Shown here piece after piece: positions 38,951 to 63,250 of a stretch of 64,000 nt of DNA. Numbering within the stretch: position 1 is the first letter of the stretch; every line of letters begins with the position of its first letter. This DNA comes from Haplodiscus bocki (Eukaryota). The notes beneath the pieces are model-generated. The model did not search any database, was not told where the DNA came from, and saw nothing but the letters and a program-made list of their open reading frames with translations. The position numbers were made by a program, and so were the translations under genes. The stretch covers positions 26,040,001-26,104,000 of the forward strand of contig OZ296650.1 of the NCBI GenBank assembly GCA_965655095.1, in the 5' to 3' direction.

Positions 38951-38954
38951 AGTA

Positions 38955-39848
38955 CCCGGGTTGAAATCCCAGAGATATTCGGCGCTAAGTAGGTCTGATG
39001 TTTTCAGCGCTGTTCAGCGCTGATTCAGAAAAAAAACGGAAAATACCCGCGCTGAGTATCACTGTTACAGGGCTAATTTGCCCAGATTTTTTGCTAATGG
39101 GCGACTTTCAGAAGTGAAAATTTCAGCGCTGATCAGAGTTGAACAGAGTTGTTTCATAGACAACCTGCTTTTGGATCAGCGCTGAATCAGCTCGAATATT
39201 AACACAGGTGGATTAGATTGTCAAATTGTTATAACGTAGTCAGAATGTGACGAAACCGCATTAAAAAACTAACAAAATGGCATTCCATTTCTTCAAGTTT
39301 TCCAAATATTCTGTTGACTCACAGCAAAAATTCCAAATTTATGCAACAATCTTAAAAATGCAGTCCACTAAACGCGAAAATGCTTCTGAAAACTACAATC
39401 ATATCAGTTTTCTCACTGTAGTGTAGCATCAAAAAGCTCGAAAGTTTAGTTTGTTATATCTTGGGCCCGCTAGAAGGCAGAACAAACACTTCTTCATTCC
39501 TTCATTCTTCTTTTCAGCAATATGGGCTGTGCCTCGAAATTGAGGTGCTCCGAAATATTTTGAAAAAAAATTATTTGAAAATTGAACTGAAAAATGTCAT
39601 TTTGAATCCACGAAGAATCCGCGCTGTTCAACACTGTTTCAGAGGAAATCAGTGCTGAAACAGAACTGTTCAGCGCTGATTTTGCTGCTCTGAAAAATTG
39701 ATTTTCCGGCGGTGATCAGAGCTGAATCAGCGCTGTTCAGGGATTTTCAGTCAATATACAGCGCTGAATCAGAACCGCGTTTGCCAGCTCTGATAATTTC
39801 TGAATCAGAAGTGATCAGCGCTGAAATCCTCTGAGACTTCAACTCGGG
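38955..39848. mobile_element. Non-autonomous TIR element (CCCG termini, TA flanks, CAGCGCTG subterminal repeats; CMC/EnSpm-like)
   Basis: ta|cccgggttgaaatcccagag ... ctctgagacttcaactcggg|ta inverted termini, with many cagcgctg(a) motifs in both arms. Confidence 0.8.
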
Positions 39849-41927
39849 TATTTTTTCGAAAAGAGTATGTTTTTGGTTTTGAATGAAAATTGTCACAGAA
39901 CGTCAAACTCGATTAAAAGAAGAAACTTTTAGATAGTTTCATTCCACAAAATGGAAGTCTATTTTTGCAAAATTGAAGGAGTTCAATTCCTCTTTTTTAT
40001 CGCTGGGACATAGCGGAGAAAATTGGTGTTCTATCGAGCAACCTTTTATTGGTTTTAACCTCCATTCTTTCAGGAATTCTTGCAAGTTTATGGATGGTTT
40101 CATAAATTATCGGAGAGTTATACGAGGACAATGCATGCACGTAAATGGCCCTTAAATACCGTACAGCGAGAAATCGACCCAGAGATACCTCACCATGTAT
40201 GAACGTTACAGTGAATTATCTGTAGTCATACAGACACGCCTAAAAAGATATACATCTACATCTTCTTTAGGCGTGTTCCCGCGACTATAATATTTCATAA
40301 TAACTCGAGTTTCATGCTCAAACACGAAAATAGTATAGTTTCTTGAAAATTGCATATTGCGAATGGCCACTGATGATTGTTATTTGATGAATTCCGAAAA
40401 AAGGTCGGGAATGGAAACGTACCACATGGTTCAAAAAACGTCAAAAACAGTCAAAAACAATCGCAAGTGGCTACAAATGTCACTCTGCCAGTCTCTAACT
40501 TGATGGAAAAATTTTCAAACAACGACCATTGTAAACTTCATAAATGAAATTTTCAATTTTACAGTTTGCACGCGCTCAAATACATTCTTTGTAGTTCTGA
40601 GATATCGATCTCCAAAAATGGCAGTTTTCCTTGCTTAGTGAAATTAATTTCTCATACAACTGTACTTGAGCCTAAAGATTCAAGAATATACCAATTTTCA
40701 AGTTTTTTTTTACAAAAAAATCTATTGAAAAAATGTCTGCGCCCAACCTAAATGTATATACAGGTGTAAATGTATATATACGTAGAAAACATCATCCAGA
40801 AATACAACGTCCAATGTGTTTTGATCTTTTATAATTACAGACGCGAAAGCTTGCGCGTTTTGATGATGCTGTGCTAGCAATGCTGATGGTATAATTTACA
40901 ACCACACTTGACGACAAATTGTCAGACTTGATGAAAACGAAATTTTTAGATGCGAGTATTTTCTGAAAAAAGTGATTTTCTGTTTTTGATGCATAATTGA
41001 GATTTTGTGGAGAAAAAGATGGCCTAAAGGAAGATAAAATATTTTTAATCAGATATTTCTCGAATTTGGCGCATTCAGATGTTGAACATAGATGCTACCA
41101 AGAAACTCAGTAACACAGGATTCCTACCAAGAATTTCAGGTATCTACGGAGGCTTATCAGGAAATTCAGGATTCTAGGAAATAAAAATGTTTTTCCTAAA
41201 CAAGAGCAAAACAAGACGTACAACTTGCAAAAGGATATATTCTACCACTTGAAAATTACAAAACTTTTCATTTCTTCCAAAAAACAACTTGATGTTTTAA
41301 TGTGTCGTTTTTTGAAGAAAACTACAATTTTATCCGCCTTCTGCAACAAATATGGTACATTTTGGTTATATAAAATTTTTTTATCGTGTCAAAATTTTGT
41401 CAAAATCCAGGAATCGGCAAGTGTATGTAAAACAAGAGGCGCAGCAGCGCTGCGATTTTTTCCGTCAACAGTGGGTACAAAGTAGATCTCAAAAGAAATT
41501 GATGAAATTTCAAGAAAAAAGTTGACGCCTTAGGGAGCGAGGACGCCCGCTTTTAACTCATTAAGTACAATATTAGACAAAAACTGGTATTCTCAAGATT
41601 CATTACTAGGTGTTCAGAGGAACTTTTTGGGGCTTTAAAAAGACTTTTTTCAAACGTGAACATGTTCACTCCAAATTGGCAAAATTAAGAGGAAGAAAAC
41701 TCAAAACACAGCGCCAATGATTTTCCTTTGGTAATATATTACGACGGAAAATAGAATCCAGAAACGGCCCAAGTTGGCAAAAGACGTAAGGCCCAAAATA
41801 TCTATGGTGTCATTTGAATTCAGAAAATCATGGATTTTTAAATCAAATTTTGTTATAACCCTCAGATTTTTCCTGACAAAAGAAAAAAAACTCATCAACT
41901 GCCAATTAACTTCCATGCACTTGACTA

Positions 41928-42400
41928 ACAAGACGGCCGGCTACTATTGGCATACTTTTCACCAACCAATTTTGTTAGAGATGCCTATTAAAAGGAGAAA
42001 AGCGTATCTTTTTCAAAAAATATTTCATCAACGAAATTTGTAGCTTTCCGAATTTCAAAAACTTTCTGTTTTTTTTCTGCAAAAAACCTCACAATTAAAG
42101 TGGAAAAAGCGTCTTTATGAAGTGATAGCCATTGATACGCACAATACCACAAATTTGCCAATTTTACCGATTTTGAAAAATGTCATTTTTTTCAAAAAAA
42201 AAACAAGTTTTGTACGTATTAGTGAATTTTTACTATTTCAGTCAAATTTTGCGGCGAATTCGCTACAAATTGGTGATAAACAATTTTCAACTTAAGGCAC
42301 ATCGGACAAGAACATTTTCAAGTAGCGATGAACATGAAAAAAAAACGTCAGAATGGAGCGTTTTCAGTTGATAATTTTCCTTCTTTATTATGAAAAAGAC
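41928..42400 (-). mobile_element. Helitron-like non-autonomous element
   Basis: acaagacggccggctactattggcata terminus shares its first 16 nt with 6527; body similar to the 11755 copy. Confidence 0.55.
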
Positions 42401-43149
42401 TGTAAAAGAACTGTGCGGAAAACCAAAAAGCTTCAGAGTGTCAATGTTTTTTCCCAACTTTTGCTGGACAAATAGTAAAAAGATTTTTCTGCTGTTTCGA
42501 AAACAAGAAGATTCGAGAAATTGAAAACACGGTATTAAAATTTCCTATATTTTATCGAGACAACCTTTTTTTGCTATACAAATCTACAAGATTGCCAATT
42601 GTGTACACAGTTTTTGGAGTTTCATTTAAACAAATTATTCATTCCAAAGTAGAAAAGTTTTGCAGGAAAAACCAACAAAGATGAAAAAATAAACAAAAAA
42701 ATGCGTACAAAAGACGGGGCAAAATAATAAAAAGTTATAGGAAAAAACATGAGGCACTATTCCACAAGCGCAATATACGATCGAAATAAGTTTCCATTGT
42801 GCTTATCCATGGAATTCTCGGGACATCAAAAATGTCATTGTGAGAAAACTTCCATGAATTTTTTCTGATCGATCGCCAGAACGTTTCACATGAAAAGTTC
42901 TCTTTACGAAATATAAAAAAGTGAAGTGGCCAACAGCTTGAAAGCTAAAATACTGAAAACTTCAAGAGAAATGTAGGAGCCCTGCAGGACAAACAAGCAC
43001 ACTCTTGAATGAGAGAAAGGCAAAATTAATTTTTTGACTTAGAGTTTTCAGGCCCTGTGCGTAGCTGTAGTACGTGCATCCGTATCCCACATGACTCATA
43101 TGTACCTACTATCTTACTTGGAAGGCAAACGCAGTAACTTTAGTTGTTT

Positions 43150-43600
43150 TTTAGCAAATTTTACAACACCGGGTTTATCATTTGGGACGAAATTGTAAGC
43201 AAATTGGAGAAGGTGGTGAAACCTAACATTTTGAACACAGAAAAACTGGATCCGTAGTCAAAAAGATGCTTTGAAAAGTACAAGAGCGAAAATTTGAGAA
43301 AAAAAGGAACTTAGTTGTTTTGGCCACTCAAAAGCTAAAGTTGATGTTTTTCTTGCAAAAGAAGTTGACTTCACAGAAATGACTGATAAGTTCCCCAAAA
43401 TGGGCTTTTGATAGAATTGCATCCACAAAGCAGAAGTAAAAATTATCTTCGGAAAATTCTCTTGAGAAGAAAAATAAGATAGTTCTAGTTCTATACGAGA
43501 TCTAAACCGCCGTTTCGCATTAGCTTAGAATACTAGTTGGAAACTCAATATCGATGGCATAAATGCAAAAACTTGTACAAGAACGATGATGTTAGCTATG
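43150..43600 (+). pseudogene. Possible decayed hAT transposase C-terminal dimerisation region
   Basis: DKFPKMG..IAST/KAEV..IFGKFS...FRISLE resembles FP.L...IP.TSA.VER.FS...RISxEG. Confidence 0.35.
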
Positions 43601-46600
43601 TCTGGGCCTATTTCAAAGCACCATAACGCCATCTAAAGCCTTCAAGAACCTCAAAAGGAAATGTTTCAAAGCATTTTGCCAATTTTTTTTCTGATTGGCT
43701 CTTATGTTACGTTTTACCTTGAGCAGCAGTTAGAAAGTTGATATGGATGGAGACAGCACGAAGACAGTACGGGGATTCTGGAAAAATCGGGAAACAAGTC
43801 AGTTTCAGTTTTTTTCACAGCACCAAAATACAGTTTGTTGAGAAACTTCCGAATTTGAGAAAATTGTCCGTACCTTGAACTCCAAAAGAAAGCAATAAAA
43901 GGAACTTTCGACAGGTACGAAAAAAAACGAAAAAAGAACAGATATGAATCACATTCAAAAATATAAAAAAGTTAGCTTCTTTATATGCTGAACAAACGAA
44001 CTGTTCCAAATCTGTGAGTTTGCCCAACCTGGAAAATTTTTCTATCATAAAGTTCTTCTTGTGATGAAAAGGGGAAAGATTCATGCGGAAACTGCAGAAT
44101 TCCGGCAGTAGTAGAAAAAAATAAATCTGGTATACCGAAAAAACTCAAATCCTGGACGTTTTCCTAAAAATTTTTACAATTCCTCGATGAATGGAAATGT
44201 CCTCTTTTTGAATTGAAATCGATGAAACAAGTTTGGTGTTTGTGGCAAAATTTAAAGATTTTGAGCAGAAATCGCATATTTAGCAGTTTTCGCTCACTTC
44301 AGCACTAGTGAAAACGTTCTATTTTGCAGTACCGAGTTCGTTCCTTTTAATGACATTTTAAACTTTAGAAAGTCTCCGTGTCAAGAAGCCCAAATTTGGG
44401 TTGTAGAACGTGAAAAGTAGTTCAAAAACAAAACAAATTCTCAGAACAGTCAAAAAAGAAAATTAAATTTTCAGTTTTTCGCAACAAAAAAAAGATCGAT
44501 TTTTTACCTCATTTAGCGTGGGATTCCTGAAAATTGTACTTTTTCATTTGTTTATTAGAATTCAAATCTAAAAAACTAGTTTCTTAATCGAAATAGGAAA
44601 AACAGGGAAAGACGGCCAACAGCTTTTATTCACTTCAGCTAATGCGAAAACCGTAAGTTTTTCAAAACCGCGTTCGTAATTTTTTTCTGTTGCGTTTTTG
44701 GCCTGACAAGTAGTCGCGCTGCACATTGGGTAAGCCCATTTTTCAGCATAAATTACTCTAAAATAAGAGAAACTCTATAAGTAATGAAAAATGTAAAGCA
44801 AAAATTCTCTTTCTTCACATCGTTTTTTACAAACAGAAGTCTTTCAAAAACACCTTTGAAACTTTGAATTTCTCAAAACTGATTTGAACGTGTCCAGCAA
44901 AGATTCTTTACAAAAAACGATTTTTATGCCAAAAATTTTGACTTTGTTTCGGCCTCAGCACAAAATTTTTTTGCTGTTGTCCGAAACTCTTTTGAAACGT
45001 ATTTGAACAATATTTCCAAAATTTTGCTCATTATTTATAGTAATCAGATTGCCACCACTACTACTCTATTGAATAGTAAGTGAATAGTAAGAATGTGAAA
45101 ATGACAAGAAAATGGTATGAAAGTTCAGGCGTACGCTGTGCGAGATTTCATACGGAATCCGCAAAGTCATGGAGCAAAGGGTGCACTGACTGAATTGAAT
45201 ATTTTTCTTATATTTTACATAAATTACAATAAAAAATAATTTAAAAATTCCTGTTATTTTACTTGGATTGAGTAATAATGTAAATTTATGCAATTTGTTA
45301 CTACTAAAGAGAATAGTTACCATAAAAAGAAAGGACAAGAGATGAGAAAATCAACAGTGTGAATTGAATGAAGATACCGAACTCAGCAGTTCAGTAATGA
45401 CTTTGACGTTGATGAAATTATTTACGGGCTCATAAATCACTTTTTACAGCCACCTAGTTATTGTCTCAGCTGATGGAGGCGCCATGTATTCTGAGTATTA
45501 TATTTTACATGAAAAAAAAGCAGTTTATCTAAACATTTCAGTATCTTTAAAGCATCACTGTGACGCAAAAGTTAGGCAAATTTTTCAGAAATTAACAAAA
45601 AGCCTTTCATACAGTAAATAATTTAGATTGTTTGAGTGTTCCTGATTGCTTTTCGACGTGATGGTTTGGAGGTTATTGGATAAAAATTATGAGTGAGTAC
45701 TCTAACTGAAAAATACTGACAGCACGAAACAAAAAAAGATACAGCCTTCTATCTCAGAAACTGAGACCGGCCTGCTGACGGCCTTTGTTTTCCTCAAAAA
45801 GATGAACTTCGTTACTACAGTAACTATGAAACATCACCTTGGCGAAGTTTTTGGTGAAGTTTTTTTTTCAAAACTTCCCATAATGAACATTTTTACTGAG
45901 CAAGACTGATACCGCAGTAGTACTGTAGTTCCAAGTTTGGCACGAACCAGTAGCAAGCTAGTCTTTCCGGATTCAACTTCGGAATATTTCATGCAGAACC
46001 TTTCAACTAAGACCCAACCGAGGATTTTAGTATGTTGCTTGGTCAAGTGTTGTCTTGAAGGGTAGTAATGCCATTTCTATTCGCAGAAATAACAAAAAAT
46101 TGTACCAGCTCATGGGGAAAATGTAGGTCAATTTTCAATGTTTTGTGTCGTATTTCGCATTACTGTAGAAATACTGTTTTTCTTTATGCTGCGCTCGCCG
46201 TTTCGTTGTTCCCCTATTTTTCACGAATGGTTTTATGGCACCAAAAATGATTGCTGATATTTTGATCTTTATCTTTTAAGGGTAGAAGCTATTTTGATCC
46301 CTTCGGGATAAAATTAGCCACTAGCAGCTGTTTGCTTCTATCTTTTAATCACGGCATACTGAACGAAAAGAAAAAAACCTATGTATCAAACATAAATTAC
46401 ATTGGATCTTGTGACTTCACGAATATGGAAGCTATGCTTTGATTTAGCTTTCCACACCGTTTCGAAGTGTAGAAAACTTAGATTTCGAGGGTGGAGAGAG
46501 TTTCCCCAGAATTTAACTCTAACAGAAATGTTTTTGTATGGTGGATACGGCTCTTGCTGCTATAACTAGTTCTGCTAGTTTTCTCTCCAAATGGCTTTCT

Positions 46601-48149
46601 CGGCTTTATTCCAGTAATCCAAAACTGACAACATGTTGCAGATATCTAATTAACATCGATGAATTAAGTAAATCTATACAAATTATCGTATAACAGAATT
46701 ATCACATTTCGTAATCGGAGAATTCACAATTCATCGAACTAAGATTCGCTCATCAACCTGCAGATGCAGAAGCTCCAACTTCAACTAATTCGCAAGTCCC
46801 AGACATTTTAAGTAATGCAAGAGTTATCCTCGAATTTGCAGCTCCTGGAGCTACCGACAACACAATCTTCTAGAAAAGTATCTTGCTTCCGCGAGACTCA
46901 ACTTATTTCTGCTCCCTAACTCGGTTGTGTCTATTTCCGTATATTTCAACTCCTCCTTTGGTATATTTGCTCATTGCACGTGATCACATTTCCTATTACG
47001 GCGTATCAAGCGCTTCCAACAACGTAGTTTTACACCTGAAAAAACATTCCTCGCCCTCTGTTCAGCGTCCCTGACTAAAGTTCACATTCCTTAATAAATC
47101 GAGTCTTCCGAAGTTTTACCCAGATAGCAGCGTTCGGTCAATGACCTTCCGTTACATGGGTTCACATGTTTTTTTTACACAGCGAGGGTCGATTCACATC
47201 TCAATTTGGCGTTATGTAAAGAAAGCTTTCCGATGAACTGAACTGCTCAAATTATCGCGTCAGCGAAGATAACTCACATGTTTTAACGTACTTTTCCCAA
47301 CTTATGCTAAAAGTTATTTTGAAGTGACCGCAGGATCCGCCCGTGACCTTGAAGATATCCCGTATCATCCAACGCTTCCGTATGCCATCTTATATACTTC
47401 AAGGGTTAATGTTTTCCGAGTTACATGTTTTGTGCATGGCTTGATTATGTATGGCAGTCACCCCCGGATGGGTTACGAAAACAATTCCATATTCGTTAGA
47501 AATCGACTACATTCGTTTTTGCGATCCATTTGAGAGACTACAAGCCAAAATCAAACGTGTATCCTCCGCCAGACCCGCGTGCCCGGTTCCGCGCACCCAA
47601 AACAAACAATCTGCCGCGCGCGGTAAGGCAACAAGTGTGACTTCCATGTATCTTACTTAAGGTTGATAGATGAATGTTTTGGACAAGTTTCATGAGCGTA
47701 GGGTCGACTTGTGAAGATTTACATAGCATTCAGGGTTTGTTTACTTAGGATCCGTCCCATCCGTACATGCATCGTAGGGGTCCAAAAATGTACGCTAATG
47801 GCTTACAATCGTATGGGCTATCGATCCCATATTTTCACTTCCGGCCCAATTAGGGACCGACCTACTTCACTTGTGGTGTTAAAGGCTCAGGGTAGAGGGG
47901 TCCCAACACGATTCCAATTTCATAGATGGGTACTTCTAATCCTAACGTACAGGTGTACAGATTTTTATGTCTCTACGATAATTAGTCCCTGAGAGAACCC
48001 ATTGGGGTGGTTAGATTTTGGGCCCTTAGGTTTTCTATTCGTGAATCTTAGAATACTTTCGCCCCAGAGCGAAACTTAGTCAAATTCGATTTTCATTCCT
48101 TCAAGTTAGGTAAATTGCCTCATCATTAACAAGTTTGACGTCACTCAAT

Positions 48150-49360
48150 TTGCTCACTAACCATACCGTACCGCTTGTTGTTTATCCGTCACTGCCTAAC
48201 AACATCAAATTTACAGAATAAGCAACGGCGATTCACGCAATGGTCAGTCCCTTCAGTTGACTGGATCTACCTAAGCATAACGAAATGTGCTGAACACCGT
48301 TCTGACAACAATCTGGGCTGCGCGCATAAATCGTATGGTTTTCACAAAATTGCCCAAAATCAAAAAAATCCTGCACGAAGAAAGCATTCGAATTTTCCCT
48401 CGATTTATGTTTTGGCCTCAAAATGAACATCTTGTAGGAGTTCCGATCATCCATGTTGAACGTGTTTTGAGAACTTGGATATCCGAATGAAAAATTAGAC
48501 AAACTGGTTTTTCGATAGTAAAAAATATTGGCATACTCAAAATGGCTCTATCATTACTATTTATAGGTCACAGTAATTAATGGGACCAAAAGTTCGTTAA
48601 ACTTGATTAGCCATCGTAAGGAGCACCAAATAAGATTGTACTGTTTTTGAGTCATGAGCAGGGATGTTCAAAATTACTATTTATTGCTACTTTTTCGGAA
48701 AATAAATATATTTTGTTTGTAGTGGCTCAAATTAAATATATTGACTAAGTTCAATCTCAAAAAAATAAGTTTCGCAATCAAACACTTCATTATTTTGACA
48801 CAGATTCTTTCCATTAATGGTAACAAACAGGAGCGTAAGTGATTCGGGATGCATTGACATAATTTTTTCCCATAATTACGGAAAATCTTGCTTTGCACGA
48901 CTGAATAGACGTTCGACAACGTTTGAGGTGCGAGGAATCCACTTCAGATTGATGACCTGAAAATATATTTCGTTGGTAAATAAATATATTTTATTTTATC
49001 GAATTTAAAACAAATATATTTTATATATTTATTGCAATATATTTTCTTTAAATAGTATTTTTGAACATCCCTGGTCGTGAGTGTCGACAGCTTTTACGAA
49101 ACAAGTTTGCTTTAAGCATGCTTTGCAACCATTTTCACAATGGTAGACTTGTGCCAGAAGCGTTTGTGAGTTGCCAAAAGTCACAATTGTTGCACGGCCT
49201 TCGTAAGGTTCTCTTTTTTCCCTGAATTATATTTTCGAGACACGATGACCACTGTTCACTTAAGGGCGAAGAACTTGCTCTAGTTCCAATGGTTGCGAAT
49301 TGGAAGAGAATTGAACCGGAAGCCTCCCCTGTGCAAGTTCAATGCCCAGGTGTCAGACTA
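48150..49360 (-). mobile_element. Degenerate BEL/Pao integrase region, interrupted by a hAT MITE
   Basis: VLRP*VNSGHRV, CENGCKACLK, LTMANQV*RTFGPINYCDL...EPF*V (P.MA.LP..R...PF..CGLD..GPF.V), LLQDVHFE (RAVHLE) and RFMRA...NG. Confidence 0.5.
48659..49073. mobile_element. hAT-family MITE, 415 bp
   Basis: TIRs cagggatgttcaaaa(t)tactattt / aaatagtatttttgaacatccctg. 8-bp TSD gtcatgag (48651-48658) / gtcgtgag (49074-49081), 7 of 8 identical. Confidence 0.92.
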
Positions 49361-50820
49361 GAGTATTAAAAGATAAGTAGTACAAACAATTGAATGAAAA
49401 GTTAAATGTTGCCACGATGCTCCCATTTTTTTGTGGCAAAATGATAGTGAAAAACAATGAAAGTACATTGAGTGAGAAAGAACCGAAACTGGAAGCGTTT
49501 TCAAACTATTCGCCAAAAAACTTCACGTCATTTTTACATATTAAATTATATTCAATGGTTGTCCAAAATTTGTGAATGTTCATAGAATTTAGTTCAAATT
49601 TGTGGTTAATAATGAGATTTCTACACAATTGTCAACATTCCTAAATTTATCTCAATATTGATTTTCCTTCAAGACATTAACGTCAATTTTCTGAACGTTT
49701 CAAACTTGAATGTTATTCAGCAAGCATCCTTCAAAATTTTCTATATATGTAGAACTGCTATTTGCGATTCGAATTCCGTGTTTTTCACATAGAGAAAAAA
49801 TTTTGCGTTTGTTTTACGGTTCAATGGTGCTAAAAGGAAGCTTATTTCACTTCAATTAAATATTTAACATCAAGCAAAAGCGAATTGAAAATCCAAATTT
49901 AGATTATCTGAAAACATCAATGTGTGTCGAATACAAGTGAATTCGTTTTTTGAATTAATTCCCGAAATTTGTGGCTTTTCAACGAAGGAAATATAAGTCA
50001 TACGTTGTAAAAAAAGTGTAAAAAAGTGTTAGCTGTATTTTTCCGGGGATTCCTGGGGTAAATGATTTTGAATGATGAGTACAAGGATCCCTAACTATTA
50101 GACCAGGGTTGCAGTGGATGACAACAAAAAAATAATCACTAAACTTCTTAAAAACACGACCATTCCGGAATAGACTCAGTTTGGTTTATAGAAACACTGG
50201 TTGAGGTCCCAGAGAATTTCAGCACTAATCATCTCTGAATAAGAAATCATCAGCAATAACCGGCGTTGCTTAAGCGCTGACTCAGCACTTTACATTAATT
50301 AAAAATCCCAGAGAAGTGGTGGTTTTCTCTGATTCAAAATGATTTTTTGGTTATATTCCCGGTTAAAAATAACAAAGATGAAAAAAGTGAATTCACATCA
50401 TCAAGTGCGCAGCTCTAAGGTAACTAATTTTACAAATGGAAATTTACAATTTTCAAATCTGGGTTAACAAGTATCTAGTTTGGTTATGTAACACCGTATA
50501 TTTGGAATCTACTTCGGTTACGTAATGTAATTCCGTATATAAGTTTTCCTAAAATTTTTAAAAATTTTTTTTCAAATAATCTCAAATGAACTTCCATCTC
50601 GGCGATTTCGGCAATACTCATGAGACGGATTTGATGTCGACACTTTAAAAAAATTGCGTTTCGATATAATTTTTGTTATAAAATGTAAGAAAACATAGCA
50701 CATTCTGGGATTAGAGCCCGCTAGCTATGGATATGTCACATTTTTTGCAACCATTTTTTTCGAAAATAGGTAGATTTTTGGTATAATTTCCAGTATAAAA
50801 TGTAAATTATAAAGCTTATA

Positions 50821-50880
50821 CTGGGTTTCGAAACTGCCACTTGTGACTTTGGAACCTTTTTGTCCTACCCACTTTGCCAT
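50821..50880 (-). other. tRNA-derived degenerate segment in a repeat
   Basis: Minus strand atggcaaagtgggtaggac...gtttcgaaacccag shows A-box and B-box-like parts. A second decayed copy lies near 50705. Confidence 0.4.
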
Positions 50881-52005
50881 ATAAAATGTAACCTAAGTAA
50901 TGCAAAAATTGGGAGACATCATGAACTTTCCAAAAAAACTCCAGTTTATTCAGAAAGGGGTATCACGAAAGATTTCCCTGTTTGCCTTCAAAAATTCATT
51001 ATATGTAAAGGGTGTATCACAACCTTTTCTTGTTTCTATTTGATTCTCACAGTTTTGAATGTTGTGGTACAATTGCTAGCATCAAGAAGAGTTGTTTGCC
51101 AAGAAAATGCAAATTTGCAAATCTGTGCAAACCTTAGATTGATTCGAAGTGAGTCTGTAACCTCATGATATTGAAGCAACTCTAACAGCTAACAGTTTCT
51201 TCAAAAGCTCTGATTAAAACATTGTTGCAATTTTCGATCCAGTTGGCAATCACACAAAACATGATGTCAATTTTAATCAGTTTCATTCAGGCAACGAATA
51301 AAAAGGCACCAAATGAAAGTATTTCAATAAGTGTTTGCAATTGAAGCAAAATTCTCTGGACGAACACATGTAGTCGATCAGTCAGTGGTTGATTTTTTTT
51401 CAAGTATCAAATCAACTTGTCCCTTTTTGATCCACAAAATTTCTGTGACACTCTGACAAGCTTCTCAAATTTCATTCTTCAAGGTTTTTCAAATTGTATT
51501 CAGTTGATCGGAAGTCAAAGTTTACTCATATACTTGGCGTCTTTAATGTTTTAAAGAGATGGCTTGCTCCAAAATTTCACGTTTAGCTTTATTACAGCGG
51601 AAATTAACGTCTTTTTTCGGACATTTATGCAGCTCAATTCCCAATCTTGAGGCATGCCTGAGCTTTTATTCCACAATATCGATTAGTATGCGGTGGTGGC
51701 GTATACTGGCTTAATGATATGCAATGAGTTGCAAAGAAAACGGCTGACTTAAACAAAGAGCCAGTTTTTTAGTCTGCGCGTTTAGAAAAGGTGCTCTACT
51801 ATTACACTGTTTTTTTGGGCTCAAAACTAGGTATATCTATTTTTTTTTCTCCGGAAAACGTCTCTTATTAGTGTTTTTACGTATGCTTCCTCATTCTCCC
51901 TCAATTTTATTGACACCGTCTCATGTACTGTGCGTGCGGACAGTGACGAATTTAGAGTTGAGAGTTTGTTGGCTTAAAAAATAGGGTTAGTATTGTGAAC
52001 AGTGG

Positions 52006-52788
52006 CCCAGACAACCATAGTCAAACATGACAATCATGCTATGTCATGGTATGAACATGGTTTTTCATACTTAGCATGACATGATCAAGGCTATTCCATG
52101 TTTGTGTCATGGTTTTCATGGACGATACCATATCGTACAAATGGTCGTCATTGAAGGTACCAGGATCATATTATGGTAATCATGGAAAATACCATGATCA
52201 TTTTGTGGTGAGCATGTTCACTATTATAACGTGTGCAGACAGACGTTCATTATCAAGCCAATTTGTTTAAGTAATGCCCTGGTGGTAGTCCGTTATTTTT
52301 CAACTAGGAACATGTTGGAAAATTCATCAGAAACTACCAGAGAGACATTCAGTACATTTGACCTGTTTTCCCAATAAAAATCGAAATTACCAAAAATAAC
52401 TAAAAGTTGTAATTTATTTGTTATATTGAAACTATATGCTATCGAAAATAAAGATTTGAAGACTGATGATCACAGATGTCAACTAAGCTATTCTGGGGTT
52501 CTTATCAATCAATTTTGGTGACGCTGCAGTTTGGAGGCATAATTTTTTTCAGCACCCGACAATTGAGCCTCATAATGCTGTATGGAAAACATTAAAAAGA
52601 TTATGAACATACCTTGATCATAGGATGAATCATGGAAAACATGGTGATCATACCACGTTATGCCATGAATCATGGCAACCATGCCAAGAAATTTGGCCAC
52701 CATACCATCATCATGGCATGATCATGGTCAAATTTTTGCCATGCTGATGGTATAATCGTAGCATAGCGGCATTTTTTCTCAACCCAGG
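52006..52788. mobile_element. CATG-rich non-autonomous element with CCCAG / CAACCCAGG ends (CMC/EnSpm-like)
   Basis: cccagacaaccatagtc... and ...ttctcaacccagg, with catg/catgatc clusters at both ends; homologous to 8517. Confidence 0.6.
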
Positions 52789-55700
52789 CCATGTTGTGGC
52801 CCTTATTTGATCATGAAAAACCAACACACTACTATTTCTTGACTAAATCTATGCGAGAATATATCTCACCATGCAATACCAGCAATTTTCTTCGTAACTT
52901 TTAAATTTTTTTCTCATTTTCCTTCGAACAATTTTATGCCTAGTTAAGTTTAGAAAGGTCCGCAGTGTATTCTTTAAAAGTGCCAGCAACCAGAATCAAT
53001 TAGTCTCCTCACAAAGGAAAACAAAACAAGACAAATATCAAAGGGCTTCTATGTGAAATTATTGGACATGGATAGAAAAAATATTTAACAAAACACCCGT
53101 TTGGCATCTCGAACTCTTCGCGTCATTTTGATGAGTAACACCGGCTGACTTTGTGCTGTTTCGGCTTTCCATGTTTTTCAATTAAAAAAGTTCCACATTC
53201 TTCTAAAATTCTCAGTGTTTCGTCATTTGTTTCACGATGGCAACTTGCATTCTGTGTTGAAGTGGACTCTGAGCTAGACATTATCAGCGATAGGACAGTT
53301 TTTCCAGCGCACGAAAAACAGTTCCAAAGAGACCAGAAAGAAAACTAAATATCTTGGTATATGTCATACTGTTGCGTAACCAATGAGTAAAAGTGTGAAA
53401 CGATGAGAACTTCTCGGTTCTCGATGTTTACAAATTTTGATAAATTTTGCTTTGTTGTTTGAATGTTGATTGTTGATTTTTGTTGAGATCATTCTAGCTA
53501 ACTTCTCGGTACTTGACAGTTGAATAGATTATTTCAATTTTTTTTCTAATTTTTCTTAGTTCAATATGACCAAAAGTGTATATTACTCTTCAACATTTTG
53601 AGATCCGAGAAAAAGCACAGTTTATGATAGTTTAACTTATCGTTATCGCTTCTTAAAATCCGAAAAGCAATTTTACTTGAACGGGTCATGAGAATTTCTG
53701 AAAGTAGTTGTCAGAAATTCATTGCCCAAATTATTGTTTGACTGCTTGTTCAGTACTTGAGCTTTCGTAATCACCTCCATACTGCCCCTTGAAAGATTTT
53801 ACGAGATATGATAAAATTTCGTACAGTAGGGCGTAGCCTTCATCTTTTTGGACACATATTTTCTCAACCAAAATAATTTTATAAAGCACCTTGCTTAGAG
53901 AATATATGACCTGCTAAGAAAACAGTGTGAAGGTTTACGAGCCTGCAGTCGCGAATTTGATTGGAAAATTTCAAGCTTTTAAAATTTAGCATCAAGATTT
54001 TCACAACTTTTTTAAATCCAGGGTTATTGGGTTAATCGGAAACGTGTCGGAAAAATCTTCATGATCTTCCTTCTTATTAGTGATGCAGCAATTGGGACCA
54101 GAGATAGATCGGAATGAAGACAAATTCGGCCCAATAATTTCATAACTTGTATTTAGTAGTATTTAGTAGTGTTCATAAAATTTTTAAGAGTTGTAGATCA
54201 TCACAATAATTATCACGTTTTAGGAATTGCAATCAAAGCGAAAGACAATATAACACAGAATTGTGAAAAACGAATAGAGCCTTCAATTGTGATCAAAAAT
54301 TGGAACAATACGTATATTTGGGTGGAACTCAACAAGTCGAGAACTTCTAAAGCCGGCGTCGTCTGTTTGGCTCGAAAAACTCATAGGACGGAATTGATTT
54401 CGATGTGTGAAAAAGATTGCACTTTGGTATACTTTTTGGCATAAATACAAGAAGACAAAGCTTATGTTGAGATTCGAGTCCACAACTTGTAGATTGAGTA
54501 GATTTTATAAGGCGGTATCACAAAAAGAAGCTGGTCCCAATGTCAAATTTTTTTTTTGAAAACAAGTTCATTTTTCGTACAGTTTCCGGTATTTATTGTA
54601 GAAATTTTTCGATGGAAGGTGAAAAAACATAGCTTATGCTGTTATTTGAACGCGTTAATTCTTGTCTATCTAGTAAATTTTGTTCAGGAGAAGCACGACA
54701 AAAGAATTGGAGCTAAAGTCGAAGTGTTTTTTCGTAAAGAGGTTTATTTTTGGTATAATTTCCGGTTTGAAAAAAGTTTGATGAAAAATGTTGATAGGTT
54801 TGGTATTTTCAAGCCCTTGATTAGCCGCCATTCGATGTTTTGCGAATATTCGCGCGCTGGCAGATCTACTTAAAGGAAATTCGAATCACAGTTTTCCCGG
54901 GGAATATCAGGTACTACAAATAATTTTCCAAAGACATAGCTTTTGTCGTGGAAAAAAATCATTATATCAAATTTCAAAAAACACTCGACTACCCGCCAAC
55001 ATAAGTGTTTCGGTAAATGCAGTTTGCGGAAAGTCGGAAAGTCAAATCCTTGATATTTTTGAGAAAACCTGGGACTACATTTATCTCTTCGAGACCCTAA
55101 TTTGGAACATACCAAAAAAAAGTTCAGTAGAACCTCCATTTTTCGCCATTCGGTTTTCCGCAAGTGTTTGCGGGTAGGTATATGTCACTCGCGTAAATCT
55201 GAGTGGCGGATAATTGACCGAGAGCAAGATAATACTATTAATATTTCGAAACTATGGTTTTTGTTTTGGAAGAAAGCCTGAGTATACCGGAAGAGCAAAA
55301 ACCAGTCCCGATTGTCCGCCAAAAGGTGAAAATTTCAGTATAAACCCTTGTATTTTCGCCAGATTTCAGGCAAATTTTTTCCTACTGATTGGTAGCTCTT
55401 CGTTGGTAGAATTTTGTAGTATTACGACTGAAGTTTTTTTACTGAGGAGTGGGTCGATTCAAAATGAGAAGAGCGCCTTCCGGGAAAAAAATTAAAGAAT
55501 AGTCACTGTGATAGTCCTTCTTTTCGAAACACCGACTGCAGTGGGGATTTGAATTGTTATTGTATTAGGAAATTTTGTATTTTTTTGGTCAAAATTTTAG
55601 ATGCACTAGATCTAATCTCTGATACATTTCTTCACAGTAGTTGTAGATGAAATCAAGTATACTTAAAATTTTATGCTTACTCTTGTTTAGAACTGAAGTT

Positions 55701-55989
55701 ATAATAAATCAACTGGCCAGCTCAGGAAATTTCTTGCCCAATCGCAATGCTTTATGATCAAGTTTGGCAACTTCTTTAAAGGAAAACGTGAAAATGTTTT
55801 GAATTCAGTTTTTCAAGCTTTCCGACAGAAGTAATTTCCACCAACGCCTTCTGCATTTGTTGGCGCTTTCAATTCATCAGAACTCGAAGCAAAGTAAAAG
55901 AACCAAGACAACATTCTAAATCACCTTTTCAAAACATGAATTCGTCTAGTGAGACCTTGATTTTGGAAGTGCAGCTGAAAAACTGAGTT

Positions 55990-56760
55990 TGACCATAAAG
56001 AAAAGCCACAACAAATCGGACTTTTGTCAATTTCGGCCCATGAAGGTACCAATGCAGGCAATGTATATCGAAATACGTTCTTCTAGTATTTTTCTACTTG
56101 GGTAAAATTGTCCACTGAGACCCTGATGGAAGAAATGAAGTCGGTGTTTTAGAATATAAATGAGCTGGACCCTCAAAAAGAAGCATACACATATGAACTT
56201 TTTGTCAATTTCAACAGCTGTTTAACACATTATATTACATTGGAAAGTCGTTTGAAACTGAAAAAATTATCGATTGACACAGTGAAAAAGATATGCAGCG
56301 GGTAGTTATTTTGTAGTATTCGTTTTAATAAAATGTAGCAACAAACATTTACTAAACATTTGGCAATTTCAGCTTGTCAGGTTTTTGCTAAGAGGATGCA
56401 AACTCAAAATATGGAAATCAAATCAACTTCTGCAAAACCAGAATTGCTGATTGAGACGTTGATTGAACAAATGCTGACAGTTGTTCTCAACGTATTTGAA
56501 ATTGAATATTAAAGGAGATATTACGGATACGCATTTTTTGGCAATTTCGACTTATCAAGATTCCTTTGCGTGGAACGCAACGCAAAAATTGGAAATCAAG
56601 TGAAGATTTAAAATTAAAAGAAGGTCGATTCGTATATTGATCGACTGAATGTGGCTAGTATTTTTGGAGACAATCAAAACTAATTTTCAGGAAAAATCAA
56701 ACCCTTTTGCAGTTTTTGGCAACTTTGGTCCCTAAAATTTCCAATACGAGCAACTTAACC
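55990..56760. repeat. Old diverged ~160-180-bp tandem repeat
   Basis: Anchor tttt(g/t)gcaatttc / tttgtcaatttc recurs at ~56022, 56200, 56359, 56536 and 56714. Confidence 0.55.
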
Positions 56761-57039
56761 CCACATATTTTTTTGAAAGATCTTTTGCATCAGTAAATTT
56801 TTTGAATAAGAACTGGATCAAAGAAAAGCAGACCGTAGCTTTGGAGAAAAGTGTGTTTGAGTTTTACGGAAGAACGAAAGTTTTTGCGTTTTCTGGCTTT
56901 TTAACTCCATAAAGTCATAAAGTTTCCAATACTAGAGCCAGAGTCAAAAATATTGCTAATGAATTACCAGTAGCATGTTGAAGTTTGTCGATTGAAATAT
57001 TGATGGATGAATTACAGCTGATTGTTCTGGAGAATTAAA

Positions 57040-57678
57040 AGTTGGAAGTTTGGGAAAAGTCTTCCGTCTAGGATGTTTGAGCAAAAAATTTCGAAATTTG
57101 GCGAAATATTTTCGGCAGGGTTGTCAAAACCGCATTCTACGTGTCTTATGGAACAGTATACAGAATTGTTTGAAAGTTTCATTATTTTCCAATTTTTTTT
57201 GGACTTCAACGAAAGTTTTCTTGACTTCTGGTGAAATTATTTCGGCAGGCTTGTCGAATTTGCATTCTGCGTGTCCAGAGGAACATTTTAGTGTTCAAAC
57301 TTTTTTTACAAATGGAAACATGTTCTCTCCGACTTGGCAAATTCTGGAGAAAAAAGTCCACAATTTGAGAATGATTTTCCTTTCGTAATATTTTACGCCG
57401 TAAAACAACAATCCTCAAAATCGTTGTAACAAAGTAAAAAATATGGAAAAGACAGAGATGCGAACCCGGGCCTACTACTTGAGAAATTTTTGTCTTAACC
57501 TCACAGCCGAGACAATTTACTTAGTAATAAAAAAATTAGCAAAAATACTTTGGAAAAAAAGATAGAAAAAAAGACCCAACTGAATGAATAAATACTTTGG
57601 AAAAAAAGATAGAAAAAAAGACCCAACTGAATGAATAAGTTTTCTTACATATTAAAATAAGTGGCGAAAAATAATAAT
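57040..57678 (-). mobile_element. Helitron-like element end with satellite units and tRNA-Glu-like segment
   Basis: The last ~230 bp are homologous to 7180-7375 and end ggcgaaaaataataat. Minus-strand 57451-57510 contains ttctcaag..ggcccgggttcgcatctctgtc, similar to tRNA-Glu GGCCCGGGTTCGATTCCCGGTC. Contains a perfect 47-bp tandem duplication (57544-57637). Confidence 0.6.
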
Positions 57679-57919
57679 TACTTTACCTACTTTCAAGTCT
57701 GTTGTATCAAATCAAACATTATTTTGTAGAAAAGCGTTAATGAGCAAACCAGGGATGTTACCAGGGATGCAACTCAGTAATGCCCCTGAAAACTACCTCT
57801 GCGTTGCATTTTTTTCCCAAATCTCTTACCCTATCTTTTTTGCTGAAATGCGTTGTCTCCTTCTTGGGGAGTCAGCCGGCTGGGCAATTGGTAATGATGG
57901 AAAGAACTGGAAAACTCAC

Positions 57920-58822
57920 TTGATCTTAGGTTGCTGCTTCTGGGCTGCTCCACTCTTTTCGGCATCAAGTCTGGAATGAGAAGCAAGACGTCTTCTCTGC
58001 TTGGCCAACTTGAGCAAAACCTTTACATAGACGAGACACATGAGCCCACTGGCTCCGGAGACATTAATGTCCATCATGAGAATGAATTCATGGTCTATTA
58101 TTTTCTGCACTAATTTTGGAAGCCACACAAAAGCCCCGTTGAGAGAGCCCTGGGCAAAAGCGGCTACGAAAACGGAACAAAGGGTAATCCTCACTCGCTT
58201 TTTGTTAAACACGGTTTTGTATTCCGTGGGGCGACAGATTGCATAGAAGCGGTTGACGGTAATGAGACAAATAAGCAAAAAAGAGGAAATTACTGAAAAT
58301 CCGAACAAAAAGTAATTGGCCGACGTGAAAACTTTGAAGACAAAATCTGATTTTTCCACAATCAAGTGAGTGTTCAACGTAACAATTAACATGTAGAAGA
58401 AATTGTAACAGAAGTCGACACATGCCAGAGCTGTAATCATTTGTTCACTTAGTGTTGTCTTGTGTTTGTAGTTGTAAACCATGATGACGAGGAATGCTCC
58501 AAACAGCCCAAATGCACCCAAAATAAGACAGGTGATTTGCTCAATGGTCTGGATTTTGGAGCTGAGGTTTTCGTCCGTCAAATCACTGGCTTCGAAAACT
58601 GAGTCATTGCTGGCATTCATGACCACTTCGTTCACTGTAGTCATTTGTGGGAGAAGATCAGAGAACGGGAACTTGTCAAAAAATGTCGGATCGCTGCTGC
58701 CCACTAGAAACGCGGGTGCAGATGAAGAAAAAAGTAAGAAACTGCTTTCGTTTTTCGGAGAAGATGGCAAATAATTTATGGAGTGTGACACTCGGCCCTG
58801 TACAGTCTTGGATGAAAGTTGT
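57920..58822 (-). CDS. Class A (rhodopsin-like) GPCR, exon encoding N-terminus to TM5/ICL3
   Basis: TM1 ITCLILGAFGLFGAFLVIMVY, TM2 ITALACVD, TM3 LICLITVNRFYAICRP (DRY-type motif), TM4, TM5 LMCLVYVKV. Acceptor aatttttcag before 58822; donor GTGAGT at 57919. First ATG at 58644 is followed by NAS/NDS/NLS glycosylation sequons. Confidence 0.9.
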
Positions 58823-59913
58823 CTGAAAAATTAAAAAAAAATGCTAGGGGTCACAAATTTGCAGTTGGGACGTTACTTTGAAAATCAGGAAATTATTTCA
58901 TTAATGCAAGTCAACAGACAAGGGACAAATTATTCCCCTGAAATTTCAATCACAAAAAGCGGGCATGGTTAATTTATCATTCAATGAATTTTAGCTAATA
59001 GGGTTGATTGCATTGGAGAACCTCAATTAACCTAATAGAATGGAGCCTCCTACTTTATCTGTGTCCGAAAATCTTGAAAAATACAAGATGTTTCAACAGC
59101 AGAAAAAAACTCGCAAATTATCGGTTTTTCAATTTGTTCTTCAAAATCATTGCAATAATTTTTCATCACGATCAATCAAAAATCCAGAAATGACAATTTT
59201 TGTTTTTTTTTCACGGAAAAAAATTGAAACGAGGGATTATACAATGAATAATTGAAAAAATGTCAGTATAGATGAATATACCACCCAAGATTTTCATGCA
59301 AGGTCCACTATGGAAATGCCTAGAACATACATTCTAATTCTTTAACTCAGGTTCTTACAGTGATTCTTTCATTTGAGAATGCGTAATTGAAAACCCAATT
59401 CACACTTTTTCACTAAATAATAGATCAATTTGCCCAAATTTCGTAGATTAAAACCCACTTTTTTTTTCAAATTGGTGCTTTGATTTTTGATTCACAAAAT
59501 TACAACGCTAGAAATGCATAAGTATATTTAACTAAAAACAATTAATATAATATATTTCAGTTATATTTCAATTGAAATTTATTTTAAAATTTGATTTTTC
59601 TGAAAAAAAATTGTTCAACAAAAATTAATAGATTAAGCTGTTTTAGCGAGACAAGAAAAACCAGTAAAAGCCTAATAGTTTCATCAAATAAAAAAAAATC
59701 AAGTAATTTTTATAATGAGGAAAATAACGCCACTAAATATCCCCAACAAATTTTGTTGAATTTGCTCAAATATTAAGCTTTAACCTTTGTAATCAAACTG
59801 GCGTGATGAATGTGTCAAAACTGTTATGCGAACAAATTGGCGGCTGGATTACTTCAAAAGAGTTATATTATCTTACAAACTTAGCTACACTACGAAATTT
59901 GAATTTGACTAAC

Positions 59914-62123
59914 CGATTATGAAGGTTTGAGTTGAAGGCAAAAAGAGGAGATTGCAAGTTTGGCAAGGGACTTGAATCTCTGATATAAACACTCTTTTCG
60001 GTATATACTTGAAAGGGCTCACTCTTCAGAATCTGATTGAAACGTTTCCAAATTGATTGACTTCTTATCCCCCCGAAGGAATTAGCGGTTGTGGAGGCGA
60101 CGCTCGTATTTCTTTGGGTGGAAGAAGAATAGAAGAAGCTGCTTCTTTTTTGATTGCTCACTAATTTTTTGGAGGGGAAAATGTGCTGCTGTGGATGAGG
60201 CGATGATGTAAAAGCAGAGGAACTTTTCGTGCGGGAAGAGTTAAGCTGATTAGTAACAAAAAAAGTGTCGAAGTTATTACTGCCAAGCGTGTTATGATCA
60301 CTGCTGTTATTATTACCAGTACTATTATGACCAGCAGATGGAGTACTGTAACCATAGGTGATTGCCGCTTGGTTTTGGGGATGGTCGTTAATAAGAGGTG
60401 TTGGAAAAACAGAGAAAGAAGGAGAATAAGAAACAGTATTGGCCGAAGTAGTTACAATGAAAATTGACGCTTGTAAAATTAAATTCTGAATTATTTCACT
60501 GCTATACGTTGTCCTATAGGAAGAGAGCCTTTTCAACCATTCACAGGCCAGCACAATTGCAAGTAGCGTCGCTGGTTTAGCACTATTTGACGAATCCTTA
60601 TTTTTTCTTGCTTTTTCGTCCACCAATTTTCTCTGGCTTGAGGTGTGTTCCTTATTCAATGCACGCGGTACTGCTTCCCTTACCGCCGCCGACTCCGAAA
60701 AGGGGTGGCGCGATAAAAAAGAGGAAGCCGAGGGTGAGACTTGAACGAAGTTGCATCGTCTTTTCTGATCTTTGGAAGAAGATTGAAATTTCTTCTTTTT
60801 ATTTGTCTGCTGCTTCGAAGCTGATTCTCGTTTTTCATCTGATGATGCAGTAACGCCAAGACAATCAGCTAAAGAAGAAGGTTGGAAAGTTGTAAGGAGG
60901 GAGGGTGTGATTGGCTGAGGGCTCCCTGTTTGCTGTGATGCTGATTGTATTACAGTTGGAAGTGTTGCGGTAAGAAGAGATGACCGCGATAGTCGTGACG
61001 TGAGAGGGAGTATCAGGGAGATCGGGGTTGACGATATTAGGGGTATGCGATATGACTGTTTTTTATTCTGCTTCTTTTCATTTTTTATAACCAGCAGCAG
61101 TTTTGTCTTCTTCGTATTATTCTTTTCCAATTCGTTAGAATCAGTCGCTAGAGCTACAAAGAAGGAACAGCAAGATTTGCTATGAGGTAGTGCGAAAAGT
61201 TGAGAAAAGAAAAGAAGAAACTGCTTTGGTTGCGGTTGCTGCGCTATATTTATACCCGTTTTAATTTCGCTCCCATGTGGTGGCCGTAAATCCCTCTTTT
61301 TGGATGGGAATGTGTTCTTTAAGTAATTGGAGCTCACCACCCCGCGCAAAAAAAGTAACAGCAGTTGTAAAAAGTAGTACTGCACACGGTACTCGTTATT
61401 AAAAGAACCAACAGCTTTGGCGACGTTGGGCGATAAAAAAAATGAACTAGAAAAAGTGAAGTTGCTTATTACATACTCAATGCATCGAATATATTGTACA
61501 AGTAATAGCACGACTGCAGCGGTGGGCCAAAGTGTAGTACTCTTTTTATTTTTTACACTGCATCTATAACAGCAGTTGTTATATTGCGTGTTAGTGCTGT
61601 TTTTCAGAGAGAAAAGCCGCAGAGATATACCGGGAGGGTGACAAATAAATTGATTGTCAATACTACGGCCCCTGTCATTGACTGGTATAACTTCCTCCCC
61701 TGAGCGATCCCTGAAGGCCTGAGGAGTAAATGAAAACTCAGAACAACAGCTCGTCTCATTTAGGATAACAGAACTTTTGGCTCCTTCTTTAACCTTTTCT
61801 TCCTGGTATTCTTTTCCCTCTTCTTTCTCTTTTTCCTCCCTTCCGTATTCTCTCAGTCTTTTGCAAGCGTTACTAGAAGTAGCAATGAAAAAAACGGAAT
61901 AAGTATAGGGATCACTTTCAAATTCACATGTTTTGTTGACTTCTTCACTCCATGAAACATCTGCAGTTTTAGCACAATTAGGGAGTGACTTAGAAAGGAT
62001 TTTGCTGTTCTTAAAGATAGTCCAGGGTTTATCAGTTGTTAGGCCAAAAATTAGAGGTATTGCTCCGTATTTGTACACCTCTTTGGTAGACAAGACTTCA
62101 TAGAAGTTGGGCTCTTGTGGATC
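59914..62123 (-). CDS. 2210-bp open exon, Ser/Lys/Asn-rich, in frame with the GPCR exon and containing no Met
   Basis: Acceptor ttatttctgtttcag|GAT at 62123; donor CG|GTTAGT at 59914/59913 (phase 2) joins A|CAA of the next exon in frame. The listed 757-aa ORF starts at an intronic TTG and has no internal Met. Confidence 0.65.
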
Positions 62124-62329
62124 CTGAAACAGAAATAACAAACGAACGTTATATGATTAAGAGAGTTGATGAAAAATTTTCCAAAAAACTGAAAAAGAAA
62201 ATATATTTTGAGAATTGCACTAAAATCGACATTTCTGGCATTTCTCAAAGCCTTTGGAACAATGTTTCCGCACGAGGGAAAGTTTTTTCTCTAGAATTTT
62301 ATTGCTTGTTTCATTCAGCACGTGTCGGT

Positions 62330-63250
62330 TTGCGCTTTCGACTGCAGTGCTTTAATGGCTCGATGCTACCAAAAGCAGTTATTCAACATATACAGTAGTG
62401 TGATAAAAAGGAAAGAACCTTTATTTTGAAATAAAGATTGGAACGATACATACAGTTGCGTTATACTCAAAAATCACAACATATGGTCGAAACAAGAGTT
62501 TCTAAAAATTTTATCAATTTAGCAACGGTGTTTTTTTGACAGTTGTATGATTTTCATTATAGAAGTTAAGATACCTTGTATCTATATTTATTCAGAAAAA
62601 AATTTGGTTCTGTATGAGAACTTTTTATGTTTTAAGTGCCCTAGACTCCATTGTTGTTTGTATGTTACATACTGTCAAAATGCCCCTCACTTATTGATTA
62701 CTAGTGGGGAGCTCACTAGTTAGTGTTTTACACTTCAAAAGAACATAGACATTCTTTGAGGAATGAAATCATTCTCAATGCCACTACGTTATAGAAAAAT
62801 GTTTCTCACAGATTGTCTATATTCTTTTAAAGTGTAATTACTTAATTACTAGGAGCTGCCCTCATGTGAAAGTAATCACTAGGTGAAAGGCATTTTGACA
62901 GGAAGTAACATATAAGAAAAAAGTTGTCTAAACGATTAAAAGATCAAAAGTTGTGATGCTGAATCAGACTCTTTTCTCAATTCATATGCATACAAAAAAT
63001 CATAACTTCTATAATGAAATTTCTACAATTTGCAAACAAGCACTCTTTTAAAATAGATGAAAAAATTTTTGGAAAAAACTTTGTTTTGACCATATCTTGT
63101 GATTTTTTGAGTTAAAAGAAACTGTATGTATTGTTCCGATCTTTATTACAAAATAAAATTTCTTTCCTTTTATAACATTACTCTGTTTGCTAAATAACTG
63201 ATTTTGATAACAGCGCGGCATTAAAGCACTGAAATCGAACGCGGAAAGCA
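62330..63250. mobile_element. Long foldback (inverted-repeat) element, arms ~430 bp
   Basis: Paired blocks include cagtgctttaatg / cattaaagcactg, aaataaagattggaacgatacatacagtt / aactgtatgtattgttccgatctttatt, tttcattatagaagtta / taacttctataatgaaa and ctgtcaaaatgcc / ggcattttgacag. Centre near 62785. Confidence 0.85.

Follow-up and report, generated by a model that had tools for sequence, protein, structure and literature searches.

Conserved absence of in-frame ATG along a long coding extension upstream of a Haplodiscus bocki receptor suggests selection against AUG

The subject of this work is a stretch of 64,000 nucleotides (nt) of the Haplodiscus bocki genome (GenBank assembly GCA_965655095.1, contig OZ296650.1, positions 26,040,001 to 26,104,000), referred to throughout as the window, whose minus strand carries an exon of a rhodopsin-family G-protein-coupled receptor (GPCR) and, upstream of it, a far longer exon that extends the reading frame of the receptor. 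Across the 796 codons that precede the first methionine of the receptor, this frame contains neither a stop codon nor an ATG. The observation is real, it is replicated in relatives and it is not explained by base composition; the comparison suggests that ATG has been selected against within the frame along the extension. The reading we lean towards is a gene with two isoforms, namely a long receptor bearing an extension of about 800 residues and a plain receptor, with in-frame AUG having been purged from the extension.

Read from its first base, the exon at 62123-59914 runs for 736 codons plus 2 nt and meets neither a stop nor an in-frame ATG, while the remaining five frames over the same interval carry 29-60 stops each. 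The open stretch over this exon (listed as 757 aa) is the longest in the window, the runner-up being the GPCR exon itself at 291 aa. At the splice joint the overhanging CG of the long exon combines with the A at 58822 to give arginine, and beyond the junction the frame stays open and Met-free up to the ATG at 58644, which is codon 797. Our retranslation therefore bears out an earlier note on this DNA, which had described 736 codons plus 2 nt free of stops and ATGs, continuing in phase as far as 58644. The same note had argued that a random untranslated region (UTR) could not remain open over such a length, and we likewise reject a chance open frame within a UTR, given the 29-60 stops in the other frames and the fact that the orthologues keep the frame open. 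When an open reading frame (ORF)-based gene caller is applied, it returns a 736-aa product that starts at an internal GTG (window 59868-62141; L005:6713-8923).

A search with the GPCR exon returned three related products, all of them from ENA assemblies labelled metagenomes. The closest, P0002 (loci L001 and L006), is 96% identical in protein over the GPCR exon, and on its contig a 739-aa ORF call, P0005, occupies the syntenic place upstream of the orthologous GPCR exon. P0005 was the only match to the extension (E=5e-30) in an exhaustive HMMER search of 1.8 billion representative proteins. The homologous exon in this relative is 2207 nt long compared with 2210 nt here, with the acceptor tgtttcag/TAC, the donor CG/GTAAGT and an end in phase 2 as in the window, and it too joins its exon 2 in phase. 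The peptide LHNR/xLSSxT, which spans the junction, is conserved between the two species, and the first Met falls at the equivalent place, within PQM here and SQM in the relative. A more distant relative, L002, whose GPCR is 55% identical, has two open Met-free stretches upstream of its GPCR exon, and these join in phase with one another and with exon 2 through the canonical sites ACAG/GTACAA, TTATAG/TT, ACCAG/GTAAAT and AATTTCAG/C. Its Met-free leader amounts to 471 codons when the exon-2 leader is included, with no Met where 5.7 would be expected, and its last intron is again in phase 2. No significant similarity was detected between the upstream exons of L002 and the extension in the window, and a scan of JGI metagenomes for further relatives of the GPCR returned none.

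The way in which the extension has diverged is that of a protein-coding sequence. The offsets between conserved blocks of the window and its closest relative are +72, +66 and -15 nt, all of which are multiples of 3. The ratio of nonsynonymous to synonymous substitution (dN/dS) is about 0.3-0.4 for the extension, which corresponds to weak purifying selection, compared with 0.01-0.03 for the receptor core; dS lies between 1.3 and 2.4, and dN in the extension is about 0.56. Nucleotide identity at codon positions 1, 2 and 3 of the extension is 0.54, 0.62 and 0.41, and within the conserved motifs positions 1 and 2 reach 0.92-1.0 compared with 0.56-0.83 for position 3. Conservation of these motifs at the RNA level can be rejected, since positions 1 and 2 exceed position 3. 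Taken together, indels in threes, dN/dS and the codon-position pattern indicate that the extension is coding and weakly constrained, and with so much divergence a frame free of constraint would have accumulated dozens of stops, like those seen in the other frames. Judged by these comparisons, the exon at 62123-59914 is a genuine protein-coding exon, conserved in position and evolving fast.

One might still suppose that this exon has nothing to do with the receptor, and that it belongs to a separate transcript ending at the stop just past the apparent donor (TAA at 59870-59868; CGG TAA in the relative), the match in splice phase being a coincidence. Reading through the donor does meet a stop within 0-15 codons in both species. 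Three species nevertheless share the donor consensus and its phase, the frame that matches is open through the exon-2 leader in four, and conserved peptides flank the junction on both sides; moreover, a free-standing gene of this kind would still be without any AUG. We consider this account highly improbable.

The absence of ATG is best appreciated against expectation. Position-specific composition predicts 10.6 in-frame ATGs within the exon and 11.3 over all 796 codons, and none is found. The exon of the closest relative also has none, with 11 expected (11.6 in the count of all 64 codons), and carries 17 out of frame. In both species the codons that are absent altogether are exactly ATG, TAA, TAG and TGA. 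TGG, which encodes the other single-codon amino acid, is present 5 times against 5.1 expected here and 14 times against 5.8 in the relative. The two other sense frames of the exon hold 9 and 6 ATGs; this total of 15 matches the number expected, since a first-order Markov estimate gives 23.1 ATGs across three frames and about 15 in the two non-coding ones. The depletion is thus confined to the reading frame, and a depletion of ATG in all frames of exon 1 is rejected. The earlier note had counted the out-of-frame ATGs correctly at about 15, and it erred in taking them to be too few, its expectation of roughly 25 being too high when 23.1 already covers all three frames. As a control, 13 of 13 other open stretches of at least 150 codons in the sequence analysed, comprising retroelement ORFs, GPCR exons and others, carry 1.0-4.3% Met, and only the extension exons are Met-free. 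It is also important that about 400 of 670 aligned extension residues differ between the window and its closest relative, and that in each of these species about 100 codons lie a single step from ATG. With divergence this heavy and still no ATG in either lineage, the relative acts as a real replicate. The earlier proposal that selection holds the frame open and excludes in-frame AUG is supported in this respect, with two more species free of in-frame stops and ATGs and sharing the splice phase.

Whether the target of such selection is methionine itself or the initiation codon is a separate matter. The extension could be an ordinary long N-terminus that takes its AUG from an exon farther upstream, as yet unseen, with its lack of Met being a property of the protein unrelated to initiation, for example because exposed, oxidisable Met is disfavoured. 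An upstream exon with an AUG is after all the default architecture, and a short first exon would escape our conservation test. A strict scan upstream for a phase-0 ATG-to-donor exon gave one candidate, MLINKMQAVPF/GTTAGT, which lies about 2.5 kb before the exon, slightly beyond the edge of the window. The extension also contains NxS/T sequons. Set against this, Leu, Ile and Val jointly account for about 18% of the residues of the extension, Cys content is normal, Trp occurs as often as expected or more often, and no chemical rule removes Met alone. The absent set consists of exactly the four 'punctuation' codons, and with dN at about 0.56 and about 100 codons one step away, new Met residues would be expected in both lineages. 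We regard this explanation as unlikely. Since ATG is lost from the reading frame only and Leu, Ile, Val, Cys and Trp all occur at normal levels, initiation is a better candidate for the target of selection than the chemistry of Met.

In the receptor part of the gene, Pfam 7tm_1 (PF00001) matches residues 52-229 of the 241-aa piece with E=7.2e-13 and 49.1 bits, above the gathering cut-off of 30.5, so the GPCR assignment made in the earlier note was right. Strong protein conservation starts about 15 codons after the ATG at 58644, and the change in constraint is abrupt. Exon 2 ends after transmembrane segment 5 (TM5), and the rest of the receptor gene may be farther off or poorly conserved. Between the exon-2 acceptor and this ATG lies a leader of 148-178 nt in which, in four species, no ATG occurs in any frame; codon shuffles give a joint P of about 0.004 for the absence of out-of-frame ATGs alone. 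A leader that is coding-like and at the same time as clean as a 5'UTR agrees with a second, short mRNA, joined at the acceptor of exon 2 and initiating at 58644, and in this way it hints at an mRNA from which the receptor alone would be translated.

The first long exon has a strong phase-0 acceptor at its start in all three species. An in-frame stop precedes it by 0-33 nt (in L002 this stop is the acceptor's own TAG), and ATGs between the stop and the acceptor occur in the L006 species only. An acceptor in phase 0 with a stop so close upstream means that something must be spliced on. If this were a spliced leader, the long form might lack an AUG start altogether, its translation beginning at a near-cognate codon that lies either within the leader or at the exon's 5' end. 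A weak start of this sort would be out-competed by in-frame AUGs, which would then be purged, and out-of-frame AUGs would act as harmless traps, as has been proposed for EIF4G2 and R3HCC1. The ORF does open at a phase-0 acceptor close behind a stop in three species, and upstream of it no conserved exon was detected. Genes with a sole non-AUG start show this very pattern of no in-frame and several out-of-frame AUGs (PMC3105428). In the acoel S. roscoffensis about 30% of genes are trans-spliced, and the published leader of that species contains GUG and UUG and no AUG (PMC9911081). Start codons donated by a spliced leader have also been described (PMC9851317).

Against a start of this kind, no near-cognate codon in good context is shared by the three species within the first 80 codons, the contexts being mostly poor, and trans-splicing at the 62123 acceptor is putative. 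A search of the window and six further loci did not turn up the S. roscoffensis leader, and it may not be the leader used by this genome. Placed in phase 0, its published 32-nt form offers GUG with no stop, whereas a 31-nt version ends in UAG, which on that reading of the published sequence would close frame 0 at the junction. The extension would in addition be 2.6 times the longest reported conserved non-AUG-initiated extension, which is 300 codons (Ivanov et al. 2011, PMC3105428). A doubtful alternative is that an AUG-less extension of about 800 codons is translated from a near-cognate codon in or just after a spliced leader, the only products being this giant receptor and a plain one made from a short trans-spliced mRNA. 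The earlier note had put forward a giant non-AUG isoform or a translated leader regulating the downstream AUG. Its premise of selection against in-frame AUG has held; these two mechanisms went beyond the evidence, given that no near-cognate is conserved and that a splice acceptor lies at the 5' end. Scanning through to 58644 on the long mRNA is implausible because 15 out-of-frame AUGs lie in between.

We return to the two-isoform gene as our preferred explanation. Cis-splicing in phase 2, whose use we infer, would connect the long exon with the first of the GPCR exons to encode transmembrane segments, and the long isoform would be a receptor preceded by the extension of about 800 residues. A short mRNA probably enters through the exon-2 acceptor as well, by spliced-leader trans-splicing or from an alternative 5' exon; in this mRNA the ATG-free exon-2 leader would be the 5'UTR, 58644 would be the first AUG and the product would be the plain receptor. 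Whatever is spliced to the acceptor at 62123, which is in phase 0, would provide the start of the long form. The likeliest source would be a short upstream exon that has an AUG and is not conserved, and the alternative a spliced leader with a non-AUG start; we judge the unseen AUG exon somewhat more likely than the non-AUG start. Selection would remove in-frame AUG along the whole extension, and its purpose may be to prevent N-terminally truncated extension-receptor fusions, whether from ribosomes leaking past a weak start or from 5'-truncated mRNAs. With in-frame AUG purged, only two in-frame products would be possible. Of the components of this explanation, the comparisons show four: that the frame is open and conserved, that the splice phase is shared, that ATG is lost from that frame only and that the extension is under weak purifying selection. 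The short isoform, the nature of the start codon and the reason for avoiding ATG are our suggestions as to how these might fit together.

Several points weigh against the explanation in this form. The four sequencing runs that contain this DNA are genomic contigs, and no splice joint was seen in them. The out-of-frame AUGs, the first of which is at nt 23, would catch most leaking ribosomes, and this weakens the proposed selective reason and makes the cause of ATG avoidance the weakest step. Comparison by tblastx and blastn of 15.8 kb upstream here with 18.7 kb in the relative revealed no conserved upstream exon, and the sole candidate from the ATG-to-donor scan has no counterpart in the relative and is unconvincing. 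The evidence comes from three lineages only, and the third (L002) is not alignable in the extension. Exons encoding TM6-TM7, where the NPxxY motif would lie, were not located by conservation in 20 kb downstream (window 38000-57919) or in 10 kb in the relatives. Finally, some weight must be allowed for avoidance of Met at the protein level, for instance through sensitivity to oxidation.

As for the extension protein itself, the best-supported reading is that its residues, about 800 in number, would be largely unstructured with a few short conserved motifs. A Pfam search of the extension from the window species and from the relative gave no family, and the ESM Atlas offered no usable look-alike, with low 'recognition'. 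AlphaFold2 run on the two-sequence alignment gave no confident fold, with a predicted local distance difference test (pLDDT) score of 26.7, and an Rfam scan of the window found nothing. The stretch LILQASIF, which had been described in the earlier note as signal-like, does form part of a conserved motif, but at residues 544-555 it is in the wrong place for an N-terminal signal peptide. The coordinates of the conserved motifs and of the other features are collected in Table 1.

Table 1. Positions in the window of the extension exon, its splice sites, the receptor exon and the conserved segments of the extension
Feature	Position	Strand	Remarks
Long extension exon	59914..62123	-	5' phase 0, 3' phase 2; no in-frame stop or ATG; homologous exon L006:10010-12216
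3' splice acceptor ttgttatttctgtttcag and nearest upstream in-frame stop (TAA, 62159-62157)	62124..62159	-	No ATG in between
5' splice donor CG/GTTAGT	59908..59913	-	Relative: CG/GTAAGT, identical codon phase
Intron, 1.09 kb, 3' end tttttcag	58823..59913	-	~8.5 kb in relative
Exon-2 leader	58645..58822	-	1 nt + 59 in-frame codons; no ATG in any frame; conserved peptide SHxxNYxPxSPKNESSF
First in-frame ATG, codon 797	58642..58644	-	Place conserved in four species
Rhodopsin-family GPCR coding sequence, N-terminus to start of intracellular loop 3	57920..58641	-	Donor AAG/GTGAGT at 57920/57919
Conserved hydrophobic helix segment	61452..61523	-	Residues 201-224
Conserved motif YLKNTFPSKKRDL	61287..61325	-	Residues 267-279
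Conserved motif IIQNLILQASIF	60459..60494	-	Residues 544-555; 'signal-like' stretch of the earlier note
Conserved C-terminal block SQSIWKRFNQIL ... VYIRDSxPLPNLQSPLFA	59937..60062	-	Residues 688-729

Some further features of the two loci deserve mention in their own right. In the window, a foldback element of about 920 bp with nested inverted repeats lies at 62329-63247, 206 bp upstream of the acceptor of the long exon. Its arms (62329-62702 and 62871-63247) are 73-87% complementary, and part of it (~62301-62500) is high-copy in genomic runs, with a depth of about 1800 compared with about 31. In the closest relative, the longer intron between the extension and GPCR exons (L001:1442-9913) contains several short retroelement-like ORFs (L001:7023-9289). 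The GPCR exon of this relative is split by an extra intron (L001:10718-11195) after VYVKV, resuming at L001:11196, and the window has no intron there. Downstream of it, on the minus strand at L001:13018-18293, is a Ty3/gypsy-type retroelement with matches to the Pfam families RT_RNaseH, rve and Integrase_H2C2, which is probably inside the next intron.

It is useful to consider where this gene would stand among known systems. The conserved non-AUG extensions of EIF4G2, R3HCC1 and ANKRD42 (PMC3105428) likewise consist of a coding, stop-free and AUG-free region upstream of the first AUG, with scattered out-of-frame AUGs and a downstream AUG that is unreachable on the same mRNA. They differ from the present extension in length (a maximum of 300 codons compared with 796), and the latter opens at a splice acceptor and has no conserved near-cognate codon. 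It is also known from sequence alone, and its lack of ATG has been kept across three lineages past the saturation of silent sites. Spliced-leader starts, such as the flatworm leader with its 3'-terminal AUG and the 'slORFs' (PMC9851317), share with it an ORF that opens at a phase-0 3' acceptor, and the setting is an animal group in which about 30% of genes are trans-spliced (PMC9911081). Unlike those cases, however, the published acoel leader is without AUG, trans-splicing here is putative and the frame hinges on whether the leader is of 31 or 32 nt.

Genes whose alternative 5' ends yield a long and a short proteoform with a common C-terminal body offer another parallel, in that the exon-2 leader here both codes and resembles a 5'UTR. 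In the present gene, though, the isoforms are proposed from the genomic sequence only, and neither a domain nor a targeting signal is recognisable in the long part. GPCRs with large ectodomains, namely the adhesion, LGR and class C receptors, similarly have a long region before TM1 with NxS/T sequons. In contrast with these, we find no Pfam domain, signal peptide or confident fold, and the rate at which the extension evolves is about 20 times that of the receptor core, with one detectable homologue, in a close relative.

The comparison provides strong evidence that selection can act against in-frame AUG as such throughout a very long stretch of coding sequence. Whichever start is used, the gene model needs the extension exon, which ORF-based callers treat as a 'protein' of its own that has no proper start, and if the start should prove to be an ordinary upstream AUG, the conserved absence of Met would still need explaining. 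Were the long form instead to begin at a non-AUG codon or in a spliced leader, the known size range of such proteoforms would be greatly extended, and the gene would be a tractable example of how the choice of start site shapes coding sequence in a trans-splicing animal. With a non-AUG start, the extension would far exceed in length every other conserved non-AUG extension known, and selection would have cleared in-frame AUG from 2.4 kb in no fewer than three acoel lineages. It would then be a clear instance of in-frame AUG serving as 'punctuation' that selection works to exclude from a coding exon.

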